Positions 20,654 to 33,818 of a stretch of DNA of 64,000 nt are shown in pieces. The stretch covers positions 271,843 through 335,842 of the forward strand of contig CBFFRP010000133.1 in the NCBI GenBank assembly GCA_965644295.1, written 5' to 3'. Each line of letters starts with the position of its first letter. Position 1 is the stretch's first letter. Position numbers and translations under genes: made by a program. The notes beneath the pieces are model-generated. The model was not told the origin of the DNA. It saw only the letters and a list, made by a program, of their open reading frames with translations, and searched no databases. The stretch is from Paraphysomonas bandaiensis. Lineage: Eukaryota; Protista; Chrysophyceae.

Positions 20654-22744
20654 ATGTCCGCCTTTGTACCTGCACCTGCACCCATGTCTGCCTTCAAGCA
20701 AGCTGTTCTTAACAGTGAAAATCCTGATGATGGTATGCTGCGCACACGAGGAGAGAACAGACACCCTGCTCTAACAGCTGCTGGACTCGGCGACTCTCTT
20801 CTGGCTCTCTTCGATAAATTCTTTCAAGGAATTTCAGAGAATGATCTGCGTGAAAGCATCCGCAGAGTGATCGAAGAGTCTCGCGCACAGTCTGACATTG
20901 AGATCATCGTCAATCTATTCGTAATGGCGTTCCACACGAGATGGTGTCGAGGAGGAAAAGGCGCTAAGTTACCTTTCTATCAGTGCCTCAAGATTCTCTA
21001 TGAAGTGTTTCCTGTTCCCGTAGAGCATTTAATAAGCCTTATACCACAGTATGGGTACTGGAAAGATTTACTGTTGTTACTAGAGGAGGTCAAAGAAAAT
21101 CCTGTGCGTGGTGTAAACTATGAACGTCTTGAAGATGTGGTTTGGAATGTATATGCTAAACAACTATCTGAGGACTACGTTGCTTTACAAACTCATAAAG
21201 CAGCTGGAACTACACCTTCTTTATCTTTTGCGGGAAAATACGCCCCGCGGGAACATAAGCATTTGGATGGATCGCTGAAGGGGGTCAAAAATCTTGCGAA
21301 GAGAATGTTTAAAAGCGATTCTAGCATTGTTATTTCCAGTCCTGGGCCAATCCATCCCAATGAAACTGATGACGGTGTACTCATTGACAATCAAGGCGAA
21401 GAAATATTGGAAGGCAGCGGTAGCAAGAGTCTCCCCCACACCTTTTCTCTGAAACGTAAGTACCGAGAGGTGGTGTCATCACTTGCGACCGCATTAGACA
21501 TACCGGAGGTTAAGATGTGTGCACATCAATATAGCGAGATTAAAATATCAGCTATTCCCTCAAAATGCTTATCAAAGAACGAGAAAGCCTTCGCAAATGA
21601 AAAGTTGCATGAAGCCCCTCATGGCCCCGTCGAGGAAGAGAAGGGAAACCGATACCCAGATAACCCTGACCGCGTCGGGTGTCGCAAGAACCTTGTCAAC
21701 ACGCTCAGCACAGGAAATGTAAAGGGTGCACAAAACTATCCACACGAGTACGTAGAAAAGGTTTTTAAGAGCAGGAAGATGTCATTTGTGAGCAAGCTGA
21801 CGGTGAATGCGCAATGGGTCAGTATGAGGGGAAGTATTGAGCGCATGGTAACTCAGAGACGCGAGTCCAAGGGATCGGCCTTATCTGAAGTGTCTCTTGG
21901 AAATCTTGTCCCAATATCGGATGTCTCCGGGTCAATGAATGGGACTCCAATGGCGGTGGCTATTGGCTTGGGAATTCTATGCTCAGAGCTCGCTAACCCC
22001 GCTTTTAAAGACCTTGTAATGACGTTTTCCGCCGACGCGACGTGGGAGCACTTAGGTGACTGCAATTCTTTTGTAGACAAGGTGAAGAAGCTCAAAGCAG
22101 CTCACTGGGGGTATAACACTGACTTCGTAAAAGCCATGCAACGAGTTGCAGATGTGGTTCGAGACCATCATCTTGCTCAAAATGATATACCTAACCTCCT
22201 GGTAATATCTGATATGCAGTTCGATGAAGCCTGTGGCAGCGATGAAACGGGATTGGCATGGAATACAGCATATGAAAATATAGAAAAAATGTTTCATGAC
22301 CTTGGTATAGACATGAATGGCACACCATTCGCCCCGCCCACTATCATTTTTTGGAACGTACGGGGGTCAGTGGGGTTCCCGGCAGCAGCAGATGACAAGG
22401 GAGTGATTCTTCTGTCGGGATACTCCCCTGCCTTAATGAAGTTTATCCTGTCGGGTGAGATGGAGAAAGAGGAGGAGGAAAAGAACCAGAATGATCAAGG
22501 GGAGGTCATGGTGAAGAAAAGGAAAGTACAAGTGACCCCAGCAGAGGCATTGCGTAACGTTCTACATGACGAGGCATTGCTACCTGTTAGACATGCTCTC
22601 AGCGGCCTGTCCGAACACCTCGTTGTTCATTCTGAAAATTTGCTTTCTGATTCGCCACTTCTGAACTCCAATACGAATCGGAATCGAAATCGAAATAGAA
22701 GTAGTAAAAGAAGAGGAATTAGAGGAAGATGTAGATCGCTTTAG
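20654..22744 (+). CDS. DUF2828-family protein with C-terminal vWA (MIDAS) domain, single exon
   Basis: 696 aa; RWCRGGKG, YGYWKDL, GKYAPRE, PEVKMCA, NAQW, vWA DVSGSM, WGYNTDF, ISDMQFD, IIFWNVRG, LLSGYSP. Confidence 0.88.
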   Translation: MSAFVPAPAPMSAFKQAVLNSENPDDGMLRTRGENRHPALTAAGLGDSLLALFDKFFQGISENDLRESIRRVIEESRAQSDIEIIVNLFVMAFHTRWCRGGKGAKLPFYQCLKILYEVFPVPVEHLISLIPQYGYWKDLLLLLEEVKENPVRGVNYERLEDVVWNVYAKQLSEDYVALQTHKAAGTTPSLSFAGKYAPREHKHLDGSLKGVKNLAKRMFKSDSSIVISSPGPIHPNETDDGVLIDNQGEEILEGSGSKSLPHTFSLKRKYREVVSSLATALDIPEVKMCAHQYSEIKISAIPSKCLSKNEKAFANEKLHEAPHGPVEEEKGNRYPDNPDRVGCRKNLVNTLSTGNVKGAQNYPHEYVEKVFKSRKMSFVSKLTVNAQWVSMRGSIERMVTQRRESKGSALSEVSLGNLVPISDVSGSMNGTPMAVAIGLGILCSELANPAFKDLVMTFSADATWEHLGDCNSFVDKVKKLKAAHWGYNTDFVKAMQRVADVVRDHHLAQNDIPNLLVISDMQFDEACGSDETGLAWNTAYENIEKMFHDLGIDMNGTPFAPPTIIFWNVRGSVGFPAAADDKGVILLSGYSPALMKFILSGEMEKEEEEKNQNDQGEVMVKKRKVQVTPAEALRNVLHDEALLPVRHALSGLSEHLVVHSENLLSDSPLLNSNTNRNRNRNRSSKRRGIRGRCRSL

Positions 22745-24150: not shown

Positions 24151-24621
24151 GTGTTATTTAATAAGAGTCTACAAAAGAAAAACTTTTACGTACTAGCGTT
24201 TTCGATTTTATTTGTGCATCTTAAGGAGTGAAATACTTGCAACATAAAATACATTGTAATTAAATTCTAATCCTTTAACAACTCAGAACTCTTGAGATAC
24301 TGATATCTGATATATTTACAGTAAACATTAATTGACGTTGTAATAGATTAGTTTATCTTTGAACACAACTCAGAATCAATCCTTTTTTTTTTTTATCAGA
24401 TTATTTACACGGAGATTATATGACCCGCAGCCGTTCAGTTTTCACTGGAACAGAAGTAATAAGTGAAATATTATACTCAATTTTATAATATTATATAATC
24501 CAAAAAAGCCTCAGTCATAATCCATGAAAAATTGTCCTCTATGTTAGATTCTGCAGAATGAGGCAATATATATAGTGCTATTGAAATGAGTTAATAGTGT
24601 GCAATATTCTACTATTTACTA

Positions 24622-24990
24622 TTTATCGCTACGAAAGCTGCTTGTGCGCATCACTCAAAGCAAACGCAGTGAGCAAGCAGGGTGTTGATATACCTGATAT
24701 GTGCTGACTTCAGGATATTTGAGTCCTTAAGGTGAACAGCCCGGATGCTTGACTTCAGCAGGCAGCACAATACCCCGGATGCCCTTGAGGTGGGCTCTGT
24801 TCCGGATGCCTGTTTTACTGTTTATTCGTCAAAGCCCAAAGACGTCTACAGAGTGTTTGGCAATGAGCTATGACTGGGCAGAATAATATCTGCTGAATGT
24901 ATATGCGGCTCGCGTTCGTTTCCCGGAGAAATATCTCCGGTACTAATCCCCCAGAACACCACAAAAAGGTGCGAGTTCGACTTTGTTGAG
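24622..24990 (-). repeat. Dispersed repeat R1, copy D
   Basis: Reverse complement is very similar to 33270-33700. Confidence 0.9.
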
Positions 24991-25371
24991 GAGATATGTG
25001 ACACGGTGAAGGTTTACGTGTGGAGCAAGGTTAGCTTCATCAGTGTAATGCCCATTTCTAGCATTCTATAGTGTGGTGATATTCTCTTCTAGTAACAAAA
25101 CCAAAAAAACACAGATATTGCAAAATATCAATTAAGAAGATTTGGACCACCGTGAAGGTGTATAATCATTGGGTTACATACTGCAAGCTTTCTTCATTTC
25201 GTTACAACTGAGATATGGCGTCACAATTTTTAATTCGCCAAACACCTTGGTGAAACCATTCTTACGAAACGTGTTACATGTAAAATTCAACTATAAGGGT
25301 TCTCATAAAACTTCCATATAATACTCACGATAAATAGTCTTCGGCTCCATAGCAGCTACCGCCTTATGTGT

Positions 25372-28300
25372 TTACTTGCCAAGTGGCGTCTTATTGGATC
25401 GCACAATAACTGTCGCCTCTAGCCACGTATACACTCCCACAATATTTTTGAGTTCACAGGAGTAGGTTCCTTCGTGTGACTTGTCTACATTATTCACAAT
25501 GAGATTCGATTTCGTCTCATTGACAAGGGCGATGCCATTACGGAACCATTGGACAGCAGGGGGTGGTGACCCTTCTGCTTGGACGTGTATATATAATTGA
25601 GATGTCCCAGTCGTCAGAACCAGGTGCTTCGGCTTCGTTTTAGATGATGGAGAAACTAAATACATACTTAAACAGATATCAATACTTTAGAATAAACACA
25701 CCTCCAATATTGATATAAATTCTTGACAAAGTCTTGACGATAGCTTCAGAGCTCGGAGTAAAGCACCCCGGCGGTGGTGTCCTACACACGCCCTCGGTAT
25801 TACATAAAGGGTCCCGCTGCCCCCCTTTTACAACCACAAAGGAGTATAATCCCGGTGTCGTGTTGGAGTTAACAGAGTTGAAGGACAGGTAGCCATCATG
25901 GACACAAGTCCCTCGGTCAGTTCGATAGGCCTCTCCATTTTTTAGCCACATTCCATGGAGTTTCTGTGACCCGTCGGTAGTAAGGTAATATAACATGTCT
26001 TGAGCCATTTTGTTCAAACCAACTGTGGCATCATCTCCATCAACAAGCCACATCTCAGCTGCTTGGATGTGTGCTTCAAGCTCTACTTCATCTCCATTGT
26101 AGTCCTCCAGAAATCTAGAATCTATAGAACGAAACAGGGTCAAATATCTCAGCAAAGATAACTTTATACGAAACACTCCTCAATACTTATAACTAATATT
26201 TGTACATTGCCAATGAGACTTACATGGCGTGGAGTTGGATTTTCCATTGGAAATAATTTGCACAATAGGCATATCTTTTGACCATATCGCAGTCCTATTG
26301 CGGTGACCCAAAAAACTCAAGATATTTGACAAGTCAAATACATCACCCGAACAGTACAGGAGAAAATGCGATGCCACCACAACAAGGACACCAACAACTA
26401 CAGCTGCACTTACTACCTGACTCGTATTATATATGATTCTATTTTTCATTATATGTGACGACTGACTACTAGTTCGATTATATATGGATTCTTGTAATTC
26501 TGAGTAAAACAGGTTCGTTAAGGTACTACACGTATAAGCGACAATAGACTTACCTGTTGTACTATCTTTGCTGACTGATTTTTCTAGTGACTCTATAGAA
26601 TCGGTACTTACCCTACAACTGCTTTGTGCCTCAAATATACTACACGATGGCAAGGGTGCAGGAGTAGGAGATTCTCTGACCACGCGGCCTTTCTTCTTCC
26701 TTGATTTGTTCTGTCCTGTATGAAAAGAGGACGGTTGGTCGCCGACTCGACTTTGCATCCTATCAGGTTTCGTCGCAGGGATTAAGGGCGGTTTGCAGGG
26801 CACGCCTTTTTCCCCTGAAGACTGTTGGAATTCAGTGACACATATACGCTGATCTGTTCTACAAGCCAAAGATCTCTTTTCGGAAAATAAATCAACCTCT
26901 CCTTTGGCACACTGCGCAGCACAGTCACCACACTGCTCCGTTTTACATACTTCAGTTCCTTGCTCTGAATACAAATCGTGTTCCACCTCGTTACGGTCGA
27001 CTATGTGATTGTACACCACAGGTATGTCTTCAGGTTCATCGCTGTCCAAATGTATATCTTCTATGGAAACATTACCAGAATCACCTGGGGACGAATGTTC
27101 ACCATCAGTGTTCACTGTTTCCGCATCTCCTCCCTCAGCAGGAGTGGGTATACTAATATCAATAGGTATCGATCGATTCGGTGATGCAGAGCATGTGGGT
27201 AAGAGTGGTGCATGTTTTAGAGCCTCCCACATTTCCTCCACATCGCCGTCCAGTGATGTCTGGGAAATCGGGCAATCGCTAGACTGAGACTGTGGTGAAG
27301 ATATCTGAGAAGTCAGCGAGCACGAGCTTGATCGCTTCCGCTGAGCACTATCGATGGAATCGGCAATACCTTCCGGCGGTCGAAATACAGACATGCTTCG
27401 ATGGGAGCGGTTCCCTCCACCTTGTGAATCACTCGAAAATGACTGAAGAGCGAACGTCTCAAGTGCATAATTTCCTACACAATTTGGGAAGCAGCTACGG
27501 AGGAACGTGAAATCAGGAGAACTGTACGGGTCGCCTGATGGGACAGCAGAAAGTGCAGCTGGAGGGAGAGAGGGGCCGGCTGTCTGCCTTGAAAACGATG
27601 AGTGTTGACCCGATATTGAACCAGAAGATATTGACGGAGCAATAGGTACAGATACCGGGGCCGTTTTGGTGTTTGGAGTAGGAGTACTAGGAGTAGGAGT
27701 AGAGAGACCGGGAGCAATACCCATAACGGGAGACACTGAAAAATCTAATGTGCCAGGCATGTATGTATACGCCGCACCTCCGTCTGCAATCGGCAATTCA
27801 CTCAAATTTGCGCGATCAGCGGGCTTCAAAATAGATAACGTAGCAATAACAGATTCCATATGACTGCAGCCATTCATCAGGGCGGATTTGATCAATTTCA
27901 AGTTACGCCAAGAGACAGATATTCCCAGGTTGTTGGCGGTATCCACGGGATCCACGATATTACAGCATCGCAAGGAAAAGCGGCTAGGCGTAGCGCCGGA
28001 GACAGCTGAATGTGCAGGGCGCTTGTTAGGGGCCATGGCAACATAGACCTTCTCTGCAATCTCTCTGAAAGGGTTCGTGATGGAATGCATATCCGAAAGT
28101 GGTGATTGGGTTCCGTTACGGATTGGAGCAACCCCTTCCAGAGTCACCACGTAGCTATAAATAGGTACGTTAGAAATCGATGAAATACCACGGCGGAACA
28201 TTCTTTACGAAACGCACCCACTGTTCACCAAGTAATACTACACTGCATACATACCTGTCCCACTGGAATCTAGAGAAAATCTGCAGAAAAGCTCGCAGAA

Positions 28301-29202
28301 CATGCAACGGGTGAGATAAAGGTGATTGTCCCTTTCTGTCATCCGAGGGATAGTACACGTTGAATAAATAGAGCGCGAGTATACTGACAGCGTATGATGA
28401 CAACATACCCTCCTTGGATCCAAGGATGGACGTGCCGCAATAACGTACACTCTCGTGTAAGCACCACGCCTGTTACACAAACATATATGAGAATGTTGTG
28501 ACCACGCTTCACATTGTAACATGAGACACTTGCTTAATCATAACTAAAGAAAAAAATGATGTGGCCAGTCCTTATGACTCACCTTTATTAATAACACGCT
28601 CCTCTTATACAGGTGATTATTGCCAATAATCCGATCAGCTTCTTCGAGGAATGTCGCACTTGCTAAGGAGCTGCGCTGGTTTGCTGTTATGTCTAAACTT
28701 GTTTTGTTAACCACACATTTTACAACCCTGATTCTAGCATTCACGAATTCAATACTTTGAATTTTATGTTCCTGTGATTTGAGGTTATGCGCACATATAA
28801 ATTATTTATAGTGAGCCCTACCTCGAAGTCTCGTAGTAACTGCGCCTTTTCATTCTCTTTAATTGCTCCACATAAGCACGAAAATATTTGAAGTATCTCT
28901 TGAAGGTCATCTTTCTCTTCAAACGATTGAGGTGTGAGAACAACGACATCCAAATCACTTTCCGGTAAATAAACACGCAATGGAAAGCTACCTCCCATTG
29001 CCACATAACAACCAACATTGCTCCCCCGAAAAATATCGCTTATATAATTTATGAGGGCTCTGGAGGCAAACCAGTCATACAATGAAGTGATGATACAAGA
29101 GCAAGTGGCATACCTTCTCTGTGAGTTACTCTCCTCTGTGGGAGAAATAGCTTGAATTAACACATCCACATCAGACTCACATATGCTCTCTGCCGCAGAC
29201 AT
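25372..29202 (-). CDS. Pol-beta superfamily nucleotidyltransferase (PAP/OAS1-like non-canonical poly(A) polymerase type) fused to a transmembrane helix and C-terminal Ig-like domain(s), multi-exon
   Basis: GGSFPLRVYLPESDLD, VVKCVVNKTSLDITANQ, HLYKRSVLLIK, LSSYAVSILALYLFN, FSRFQW, NIVDPVDTANNLGISVS; TM VVSAAVVVGVLVVVASHFLLYC (26416-26351); I-set motif AEGSPPPAVQWFRNG...LIVNNV...EGTYSCELKN. Predicted introns include 28821-28772, 26553-26500, 26223-26122 and 25701-25656. Confidence 0.8.
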
Positions 29203-29786
29203 GTTGAGTCAGTGAGGTGGGAGTGTGGATTATTTATTCATCAACTCTAACTAACTATGATAATATTTACAATACCACTCAAGTTCTGTTATGCCTTTCA
29301 AATCGAGTAGATGGTAGAGGGACAAGAATATATTCGGATGTGGAATAGTTGAAACACTGTCGTGTGATGGTGAACTGAATGCGTCGACTCTGAAGCCTCA
29401 TCTCACAAGTATACAAGAGAGCCTATAGAACCATATACTGCTATATACAGTACCGCATATACCATATCCCCATATACGTATGTATACACACAGAATGAAA
29501 CCTTTCCCAACTTTACGTTGAAGATTTCCATTTTGTTGCCTATGCATTTTTTTGATGGTATTATTGGAATATTATGGAATAGCGCCACTTTTTATTCATA
29601 TAGGTCATAAAAATGGCCTTTTGCATGTGGTAGGGTAGGAATTTCTAGATACAACTCCAGACTCCAGAACTTACTTGGAGCTACGAAGACGTACTCCAGT
29701 ACTGGTACTGCTGTACAGGCTGCTGTAAAAAACAACACCTAGAATGTAGAGAGTATGTATGTACACGCATGTATGCCCGTCTCACA

Positions 29787-29937
29787 CGTCTCGGCAGTCA
29801 GCATCTCATTTTGCGGAAATAAATTGAAGTAGAAAACTTCTATATTACTGAACTACAACTACGGCTCGAATACACATCATTATTACCTCAATATTAGAGG
29901 CATCTTGGAACAAAAATAAACGAAGGATGCCGATACG
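29787..29937 (+). mobile_element. MITE R2, copy 2 (151 bp)
   Basis: CGTCTCGGCA...TGCCGATACG; 2-bp TSD CA. Confidence 0.88.
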
Positions 29938-32395: not shown

Positions 32396-33269
32396 AAGAA
32401 TTGATAGCAGTTATGAAATAAAATTATTTTCTCCGTATATTATTTTATTTAGAATTTTCATTTCTCTCTCTCTCCTACGCGCTCTTTCTTGCAGTTAGGG
32501 CTGCTTTAATGGTCGAGCAATTCATATTCGTAATCAAGATCTCATAGCATACTCCCAGCCCACACTTAAATAATTCAGGACCACTGTGGAGTAATGTCAG
32601 CAATGTGGTTCATACCTAAAAAGCTGACTCCTCTCAACTCTCATACGCTCTATTACACTTGTACTACGAATAATTTTTACTTACTCAAAAACACAATTAT
32701 TAATATCTGTTCTAATTCACTTAACTCAAACAAAGGAATGTTGGTAGATACAGTTCACAACTATAACGAATTCACAGGACAAATTCAAAGCAACAAAGCT
32801 TACGTAGTTTTCGTTGATTATATAACATATAGAATGACGTTTTTGTACTGATTGCTGAGTTTTGCTGGGTTTTGTACGCAATTAGAGGCTTTTCGTTACT
32901 GAAGGACTGCAATAGTTAAGGACAGTGTTTTATATAAACATAAGCAATTATAAAAGTTAGCTTGAAACACTGAAATATATAATATATTGAATGTATAACC
33001 TTATTGTGTTTATCTAAAATCGTGAAATTTTGGTTGGTAGTAGTGAATGACAATAAATAATGAAAAACTCCTATTATAATTTTAATCAATTGAGTATGTG
33101 TGAATTCCTAGCTCAGGAACTTTTTCCTAATTGTTCAAATGTCAAATATTGATACTGATGATGAAATTATTAATTTACTGCTCTTGTTTGCTGTTGTCTG
33201 CCTATATCAAATCGTAGTAAGCGCCCTCAAGAAAGTCGGACTTGCATCTTTTTGTGGTGTTCTGCTTTC

Positions 33270-33818
33270 TCAACAAAGTCGGACTCGCACCATTTCGTGG
33301 TGTTTTGAGGGATTAGTACCGGACGCGAGCCGCATATACAATCAGCAGATATTATTCTGCCCAGTCATAGCGTCATAGCTCATTGCCAAATGCTTGTGTG
33401 ACACAAGAGACACAAATAAGTGTCACTTCTGTAGACGTCTTTGGGCTTTGACGAATAAACAGTAAACAGGCATCCGGGACAGAGCCCACCTCAAGGGCAT
33501 CCGGGGTATTGTGCTGCCTGCTGAAGTCAAACATCCGGGCTGCTCACCTTAAGGACTCAAATATCCTAAAGTCAGCACATATCAGGTATATCCACACTCT
33601 GCTTGCTCACTGCGTTTGCTTTTTGAGTGATAGAGCGAGAATGATTGCATCTTGGTGCTTGCGGTGATGCACAAGCAGCTTTTGTAGCGTTAAATAGTAG
33701 GACATCAGAGCTAAGCACTAGTTAGCTATATATATTGTTTTGCTACATTAATTTTGACTCTCAAACGCCTATTACTGCTAATAATAAAACATTCACTAGT
33801 ACTCATCATAGCAAGAAC
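33270..33818 (+). repeat. Dispersed repeat R1, copy E (most complete)
   Basis: Colinear with all other copies; ends ...GCAAGAAC as copy F does. Confidence 0.9.

Follow-up and report, generated by a model that had tools for sequence, protein, structure and literature searches.

One spliced chrysophyte gene joins a TENT-type nucleotidyltransferase to a predicted transmembrane helix and tandem immunoglobulin domains

To our knowledge, RNA 3' tailing enzymes of the terminal nucleotidyltransferase (TENT) kind, such as Cid1, Trf4, GLD-2, TUT4/TUT7 and URT1, are soluble nuclear or cytoplasmic proteins, and none has a transmembrane (TM) helix or an exoplasmic domain. A locus of the chrysophyte Paraphysomonas bandaiensis raises the question of whether such an enzyme can be built into a membrane protein. 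The locus lies in a stretch of 64,000 nucleotides, hereafter the window (positions 271,843 to 335,842, forward strand, of contig CBFFRP010000133.1 in NCBI GenBank assembly GCA_965644295.1), and all coordinates below are counted from its first letter. A sequence-only reading of this DNA had proposed one minus-strand gene for a receptor-like protein composed, in this order, of a Pol-beta nucleotidyltransferase (NTase), a disordered linker, a single TM helix and immunoglobulin (Ig) domains. The layout is confirmed to come from one spliced gene, and the interpretation towards which we lean, with modest confidence, is that of a single-pass membrane-tethered RNA 3' tailing enzyme, comprising a TENT-type NTase, a linker of ~450 residues, a TM helix, a stalk and two Ig domains across the membrane.

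The gene structure was derived from contigs of four public sequencing runs (X1, X2, X5 and X7), aligned to window positions 24300-29900. A 3706-nt transcript contig of run X2 describes a single minus-strand mRNA of 8 exons and 7 GT-AG introns (Table 1), so that all seven joints, and with them the proposed order of one protein, are seen in one contig. Every joint seen in the contigs of the four runs is GT..AG on the minus strand. A 2900-nt contig of run X1, which carries another organism label, covers 25141-28154 plus 94 nt of exon 4, spanning the 3' untranslated region (UTR), the Ig domains, the helix, the linker, the NTase C-lobe and part of exon 4, and contigs of X5 and X7 (2024 study) show the 3' joints. 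Run X5 is a recorded poly(A) marine metatranscriptome, two of the runs are RNA by guess only, and X1 is flagged as probably DNA, yet its contigs are spliced; since the evidence consists of contigs, transcript ends and minor isoforms lie beyond its resolution. The spliced coding sequence (CDS), 29202 to 25372 (-), is an open frame of 1103 amino acids whose ATG at 29202 is preceded by in-frame stops. The predicted protein differs at 3 residues (99% identity) from P0001, a 'type:complete' protein of the Paraphysomonas transcript set MMETSP1103, the taxon id of which is that of the genus Paraphysomonas (chrysophyte stramenopile). As X2 is possibly the same data set as P0001, the two were counted as one source, with X1, X5 and X7 as further sources. 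The sequence-only reading was right in its open reading frames (ORFs) on this strand (28741-29202, 26180-28201 of 673 aa, 25679-26176 and 25372-25665) and in its three predicted introns of 54, 102 and 46 nt, which are GT-AG joints at 26500-26553, 26122-26223 and 25656-25701 in RNA or probable-RNA contigs; the sequence features that it named are all present where it placed them, although it overlooked a further in-frame 54-nt intron inside the first ORF. Run X1 shows a polymorphism at window position 27688, namely a 6-nt in-frame deletion where the linker has its TPTPSTPTP repeat, and the organism labels A and B differ from each other at a handful of single bases.

The kind of enzyme was judged from the N-terminal domain. 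By Pfam, the first ORF matched NTP_transf_2 (4.8e-6) and MTPAP-like_central (6e-6), and the spliced protein matched the latter at 7e-10. Relatives numbered 1324 in a full scan of 1.84 billion representatives; in 42 of them that were aligned, G53, S54, D65, D67, D136, K165, S167, K172, D312, N318 and N319 are invariant, and the GS...DLD motif and third Asp (SLDIT) that had been read from the DNA are thus present and fixed. A profile of these 42 relatives matched TUT4, TUT7, Trf4, Cid1, GLD-2, URT1, MEAT1 and CutA in the PDB (1.6e-13 to about 5e-6), the first six at 1.6e-13 to 1e-8, with canonical poly(A) polymerases (PAPs) as weaker matches. Profile positions 274-323 (NIxDP..NNLG.SVS) correspond in the alignment to the C-lobe of TUT4 and that of TUT7, the latter protein being matched over positions 18-323, in agreement with the C-lobe (NIVDP..NNLG.SVS) earlier placed in the 673-aa ORF. 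The profile alone succeeded in this comparison, as a single-sequence phmmer search of the PDB gave no match at E up to 1; the Pfam PAP_assoc model had no score on the spliced protein despite the profile-level C-lobe match, and NCBIfam returned only a sub-threshold archaeal CCA-adding enzyme (19.6 bits against a cut-off of 281). Pfam PF26180 (PAP-OAS1) is annotated on P0001 and on all 18 relatives listed, and atlas clusters carrying it score 0.96-0.97; it is to be noted that this assignment is a precomputed annotation, and that the Pfam scan of the spliced protein did not report the PF26180 model. Plant PF26180 members (Zingiber, Heracleum) are full-length relatives of 29-35% identity with the same family consensus. 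All 115 non-membrane rows keep residues G53, S54, D65, D67 and D136, as do all but one of the 28 relatives that bear a TM helix or Ig domains, and most TM/Ig relatives also keep the K/S/K and S..Y motifs common to RNA-tailing TENTs. By these sequence comparisons, the NTase is of the Cid1/Trf4/GLD-2/TUT (TENT) kind and the PAP-OAS1 subfamily, with intact catalytic residues. Because it belongs to a superfamily of RNA 3' tailing enzymes, with every catalytic motif conserved, RNA 3' tailing is taken as its probable chemistry. The sequence-only reading had also entertained the synthesis of nucleotide second messengers. OAS, cGAS and the CD-NTases belong, like this protein, to the superfamily of the Pol-beta fold and are tied to it by the historical name 'PAP/OAS1 substrate-binding domain', whereas no OAS or cGAS chain occurred among the 45 PDB profile matches at E up to 1, and neither OAS1_C nor Mab-21 matched the spliced protein in Pfam at E up to 1. 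Since the profile matched only Cid1/Trf4/GLD-2/TUT-type tailing enzymes and canonical PAPs, the OAS/cGAS-like option is disfavored and finds no sequence support.

The NTase is followed by the Ser/Pro-rich linker that had been predicted at about 450 aa (residues 346-804; 16.7% Ser and 9.2% Pro, measured over 346-800), which is poorly conserved (identity 0.04-0.2 in most blocks) except for islands at about 445-480 and 541-560. A Kyte-Doolittle scan in 19-residue windows found a sole segment above 1.6, at residues 799-832 with a peak of 2.55, within which the putative helix is placed (Table 1). K796 and R798 stand just before it, in line with the basic residues of the sequence-only reading, and D residues follow it, such that the flanks of the helix hold two K+R before and none after, versus no D/E before and two after. 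A positive-inside bias was also found when 20 relatives were summed, with 46 K+R within 15 residues before the helix versus 27 after. The NTase profile begins at residues 1-6 in this protein as well as in P0008, P0009, P0010, P0017, P0022 and P0166, and the N-terminus is acidic. Because there is no signal peptide, the NTase domain starts at residue 5, here and in the orthologs, and the helix is single, the NTase would be cytosolic and the Ig domains would lie across the membrane. An N-in/C-out orientation would indeed be the only one compatible with an absent signal peptide, a placement that follows from logic and not from lumenal signatures. The type II topology proposed earlier is therefore in accord with the charge bias, with the absence of a signal peptide and with the presence of only one helix, and draws no support from the lumenal marks (sequons and disulfides) that are weighed below.

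The C-terminal part consists, by AlphaFold and Foldseek, of a roughly 55-aa stalk and two tandem I-set Ig domains. In the last ORF, Pfam scored Ig_3 at 1e-11 and I-set at 6e-10, and in the spliced protein it gave Ig_3 40.7 bits (cut-off 30) and I-set 33.8 bits (cut-off 23.7); the anticipated I-set domain thus exceeds its curated cut-off, and the joint of the 46-nt intron that completes it is seen in the contigs. An AlphaFold model of the ectodomain from 16 sequences has two beta-sandwich domains and a mean predicted local distance difference test score (pLDDT) of 76, exceeding 90 in Ig2 and reaching about 80-93 over most of Ig1. By Foldseek, its best matches were the tandem Ig1-2 modules of LAR, MuSK and Robo, together with titin (1e-10). 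Thus, the segment that the sequence-only reading had termed degenerate and Ig-like is Ig-like, yet it is a real first Ig domain. I-set clusters of the ESM Atlas reached TM-scores of 0.5-0.58 against the ectodomain model. Ig2 is the best conserved region outside the NTase; five aligned Ig2 orthologs retain the F-strand Cys (GTYSC) and the C-strand Trp but have H, R, E, Q or D in the B-strand position, while in Ig1 of this protein Phe replaces the F-strand Cys. An ectodomain search of a 5.8-billion-protein set returned only generic Ig proteins beyond the query itself, owing to the length window, and the orthologous ectodomains were recovered via the NTase search. No ectodomain paralog was found in the same genome at E up to 0.001.

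The order of NTase, one helix and, in many, Ig domains was also seen in about 20 cluster representatives. Most relatives are metagenome sequences; those with a named source come from Paraphysomonas imperforata, Mallomonas annulata, Chlorochromonas danica, 'Chrysophyte H1' and the brown alga Discosporangium. Among the closest representatives, a single strong hydrophobic helix follows the NTase in nearly every long protein. Both helix and Ig domains are present in P0009, P0010, P0014, P0018, P0022, P0029, P0072, P0095/P0177, P0125, P0166 and P0172, of which P0166, from P. imperforata, has 1340 aa and 53% NTase identity, whereas the helix is followed by a short or non-Ig tail in P0008, P0015, P0017, P0021, P0023, P0026, P0030, P0041 and P0167; several members of the clade, for example P0008 and P0041 of Mallomonas, end in a tail of only 19-41 residues and have no Ig domain. 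In Discosporangium (P0056), Ig is present and the hydrophobic segment is weaker. The possibility that relatives always carry two separate genes was answered by P0018, in which the full NTase-TM-Ig layout is encoded by a single ORF of 2640 nt, without introns, on a genomic contig of 16.9 kb; the architecture is therefore not the product of a splicing or assembly artefact. A maximum-likelihood tree built from 143 NTase domains puts the present protein in a 22-row clade with a Shimodaira-Hasegawa-like approximate likelihood ratio test (SH-aLRT) value of 95, which holds 10 TM+Ig rows, 4 TM rows and 5 rows without helix; most of these last rows are short and have probably been truncated. The NTase-TM(-Ig) proteins of this clade stem from P. 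imperforata, Mallomonas, 'Chrysophyte H1' and metagenomes. The brown-algal type groups in a sister clade (SH-aLRT 97), and the 102 rows of a plant-like clade (SH-aLRT 100) carry neither Ig nor a helix that exceeds the hydropathy threshold. The tree is a quick search with several long branches, and its deeper order is uncertain. Overall, chrysophytes conserve the predicted NTase-TM(-Ig) layout, which extends to brown algae.

Under the preferred interpretation, that of a membrane-tethered tailing enzyme, the NTase would face the cytosol and add untemplated nucleotides to RNA 3' ends near one particular membrane, while the helix and the Ig ectodomain would set its location, possibly clustering it through self-binding or through a lumenal or extracellular partner. 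The flexible linker could be a tether letting the enzyme sweep a zone near the membrane; the length and variability of the linker make allosteric transmission unlikely and fit such a tether. Since some members of the clade keep the helix yet have almost no C-terminal tail, the sequences suggest that anchoring may be the core feature and the Ig pair an additional module that serves in sorting, retention, self-association or the binding of a partner. Several observations nonetheless weigh against this interpretation and have moderated our confidence in it. The helix was called by a hydropathy scan and the signal peptide was judged absent by inspection, and in the brown-algal relatives the hydrophobic segments are weak (1.41 to 1.66). 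Positive marks of a lumenal or extracellular location are also wanting: the sequons NRT, NST, NTT and NET after the helix are present, as the sequence-only reading had pointed out, but fail as lumenal evidence, because over 20 family members the post-helix sequons number 59 against 56.3 expected from composition, and are no denser than those before the helix; Cys is likewise not enriched after the helix, its density being lower there in most of the 20 members, and the canonical B-F disulfide is found in neither Ig domain, which leaves no positive sign of an oxidizing compartment. An AlphaFold prediction of the NTase domain from the single sequence had a mean pLDDT of 34 and gave no confident fold. 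Lastly, the contigs leave room for an extra isoform that starts from an internal promoter near MKNRIIYN.

Comparison with known systems places the protein within an established kind of enzyme while setting its architecture apart. With the TENTs it has in common a PAP-associated C-lobe and a Pol-beta core that carries hG[GS], DxD and the third Asp, although their identity to it is low and they are not known to have its TM helix and Ig domains. With the plant PAP-OAS1 members, which presumably include the Arabidopsis NTP2/6/7/8 clade, it has the Pfam family and its consensus in common, but the 102 representatives of the plant-like clade have no Ig and no helix above the threshold. According to a review, plant NTP6 and NTP7 cytidylate pre-miRNAs, and NTP8 is found in P-bodies (PMC13030794). 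The closest functional parallel may lie in animals, in which TENT5 (FAM46) is held at the endoplasmic reticulum (ER) by the transmembrane proteins FNDC3A/B and there polyadenylates the mRNAs of secreted proteins (PMC13291444). Both systems would bring a tailing enzyme to a membrane via a transmembrane protein rich in Ig-fold domains, and so restrict tailing in space, such that the chrysophyte protein could be viewed as a one-polypeptide version of TENT5 and ER-membrane FNDC3; nonetheless, two proteins are involved in animals against one here, and TENT5 belongs to another NTase subfamily. Moreover, FNDC3 has its FN3 domains on the cytosolic side, whereas the Ig domains here would be placed across the membrane from the enzyme. 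The relation is one of analogous function, not of membership.

The receptor-like character that the sequence-only reading had proposed deserves separate consideration. In a true receptor enzyme, an external ligand or cell surface would bind the Ig domains and cluster or activate the NTase, which would then tail RNAs or make a nucleotide signal; if so, the protein would be a signaling receptor of a new enzymatic class. The layout does resemble that of receptor kinases and phosphatases, since LAR-type phosphatases, MuSK and Robo, the very proteins whose Ig1-2 modules were the best Foldseek matches, likewise combine tandem I-set Ig domains with one helix and an effector part in the cytosol; the conservation of Ig2 and that of the catalytic residues in the membrane-bound clade point in the same direction. 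Differences are equally evident, in that the effector is an NTase, there is no signal peptide, the polarity is reversed (enzyme N-terminal, Ig C-terminal) and the canonical disulfide is absent. Across a ~450-residue linker of such low identity, allosteric coupling is unlikely and only clustering could signal; the helix-bearing Mallomonas proteins and others without Ig indicate that Ig is dispensable for the core function, and a nucleotide signal is disfavored by a profile without similarity to OAS, cGAS or CD-NTases. On balance, a true receptor enzyme appears rather unlikely. Framed as a new receptor-enzyme class, in which a ligand, a prey surface or another cell binds Ig and the resulting clustering switches on tailing or nucleotide-signal activity, the proposal is held to be more doubtful still; if it were true, a membrane event would be tied directly to RNA fate in ochrophyte protists and brown algae.

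Other members of the NTase family bear on whether the enzyme tails RNA at all. Three NTase paralogs in the same genome have PX phosphoinositide-binding domains (Pfam PX 1e-16 to 1e-18). In one of these (L004 in Table 1), PX and NTase are assumed to form one gene; the other two (L006 and L007) look, from their motifs, like pseudo-enzymes. Outside the window, the relatives P0032, P0071 and P0171 have long N-terminal TPR arrays and the NTase at the C-terminus. The PAP-OAS1 NTase family is evidently prone to gaining localization modules. MiD49 and MiD51 are NTase-fold proteins on mitochondria, and in analogy to them the present NTase might be a membrane scaffold or nucleotide sensor, or it might act on another substrate, such as a protein or a small molecule, instead of RNA. 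Substrates are established for almost no PAP-OAS1 family member, and the two PX-bearing paralogs that lost DxD document that this organism also uses the fold without catalysis. Against this, the metal-binding carboxylates are retained in the present protein and in 27 of its 28 membrane or Ig relatives, most of which also have the K/S/K and S..Y motifs, its closest solved relatives are all RNA 3' tailing enzymes, and NTP6 and NTP7 use pre-miRNAs, as cited above; a role other than RNA tailing is thus regarded as fairly improbable. Finally, a fusion artefact, in which read-through or assembly joined the adjacent genes of an NTase and of a small membrane protein with Ig, or in which the hydrophobic stretch is no membrane helix, is very improbable, for although the depth of the X5 and X7 contigs is higher over the 3' exons and contigs fall short of proving a single molecule, the reading frame is open over all seven joints, the identical domain order recurs in many species, P0018 holds everything in its single genomic ORF, and the segment that reaches 2.55 over 19 residues recurs at the same relative position in relatives.

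The coordinates of the gene and of its paralogs are collected in Table 1. Near the gene, a dispersed repeat of ~340 bp occupies 24650-24990, roughly 160-500 bp past the end of the 3' UTR (about 400-700 bp past the stop codon), and a second copy lies at about 33269-33631. Across the genome, at least 40 copies were scored (2519 first-look candidates), with 73-82% identity; transcript contigs reach a very high summed depth on the repeat (28,000 at most, in X1) and show many loose ends there, and Rfam gave no match to the repeat beside the gene. The neighboring gene at 20654-22744 (+) is a single uninterrupted ORF of 696 aa that is, by eye, vWA/DUF2828-like, and on the other side, at 30-32 kb on the plus strand, there are short exons that look TPR-like.

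Table 1. Positions of the NTase-TM-Ig gene, its exons, introns and encoded domains in the window, and of the PX-bearing paralogs in the same genome
Feature	Position	Strand	Evidence or remark
Whole mRNA	25153..29377	-	X2 contig, with X1, X5, X7 partial
Exon 1, CDS part; exon continues to at least 29377 as 5' UTR	29114..29202	-	Contig joints
Intron 1, 54 nt, in frame, inside first ORF	29060..29113	-	Joints in X1, X2
Exon 2: hG[GS] motif (G53 S54) and DLD (D65, D67)	28822..29059	-	Joints, alignment
Intron, 50 nt	28772..28821	-	GT-AG joint
Exon 3: third catalytic Asp D136 (SLDIT) and K165/S167/K172 motif	28583..28771	-	Joints, alignment
Intron, 113 nt	28470..28582	-	GT-AG joint
Exon 4: central helical part, LSSYA motif (S196, Y198)	28255..28469	-	Joints, motif check
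Intron, 100 nt	28155..28254	-	GT-AG joint
Exon 5: NTase C-lobe (NIVDP..NNLG.SVS; D312 N318 N319; ends near 27851) and most of Ser/Pro-rich linker	26554..28154	-	
Intron, 54 nt	26500..26553	-	GT-AG joint
Exon 6: linker end, predicted TM helix, start of putative exoplasmic stalk	26224..26499	-	Joints
Intron, 102 nt	26122..26223	-	GT-AG joint
Exon 7: stalk, Ig domain 1 (about 25814-26065, residues 889-972), first strands of Ig domain 2	25702..26121	-	
Intron, 46 nt, inside Ig domain 2	25656..25701	-	GT-AG joint
Exon 8, CDS part: remainder of Ig domain 2; stop codon 25372-25374	25372..25655	-	
NTase domain, residues 1-345, introns included	27851..29202	-	Pfam, alignment, profile
TM helix V806-Y826 (predicted)	26354..26416	-	Kyte-Doolittle scan
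I-set domain (Ig domain 2), 46-nt intron within	25393..25747	-	Pfam, AlphaFold, Foldseek
Paralog L004	G000:C280:38048-41779		GS/DLD/D kept; PX and NTase separate ORFs about 0.8 kb apart, same strand
Paralog L006	G000:C288:616341-619745		PX and NTase in one continuous ORF; DxD lost (LPDDPISLS)
Paralog L007	G000:C338:136362-139778		PX and NTase in one continuous ORF; DxD lost (LPDDPISLS)

This architecture is not known to have been described before, and full-text literature searches found no description of a transmembrane or Ig-linked TENT, although their coverage is incomplete and the result is an absence of evidence only. The protein represents an apparently new domain architecture and a conserved subfamily within a known kind of enzyme. 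RNA 3' tailing enzymes are usually treated as soluble proteins that acquire specificity from their partners; here, an apparently intact member is built into a predicted membrane protein with Ig domains. The PX fusions in the same genome point to repeated membrane recruitment of this NTase family, and the protein itself is a clear stramenopile example of tandem I-set Ig domains like those of animals. Together with its relatives, it suggests an origin of spatially confined RNA tailing that is independent of the TENT5-FNDC3 system of animals, and it may offer a one-protein model for how membrane position selects RNA substrates.

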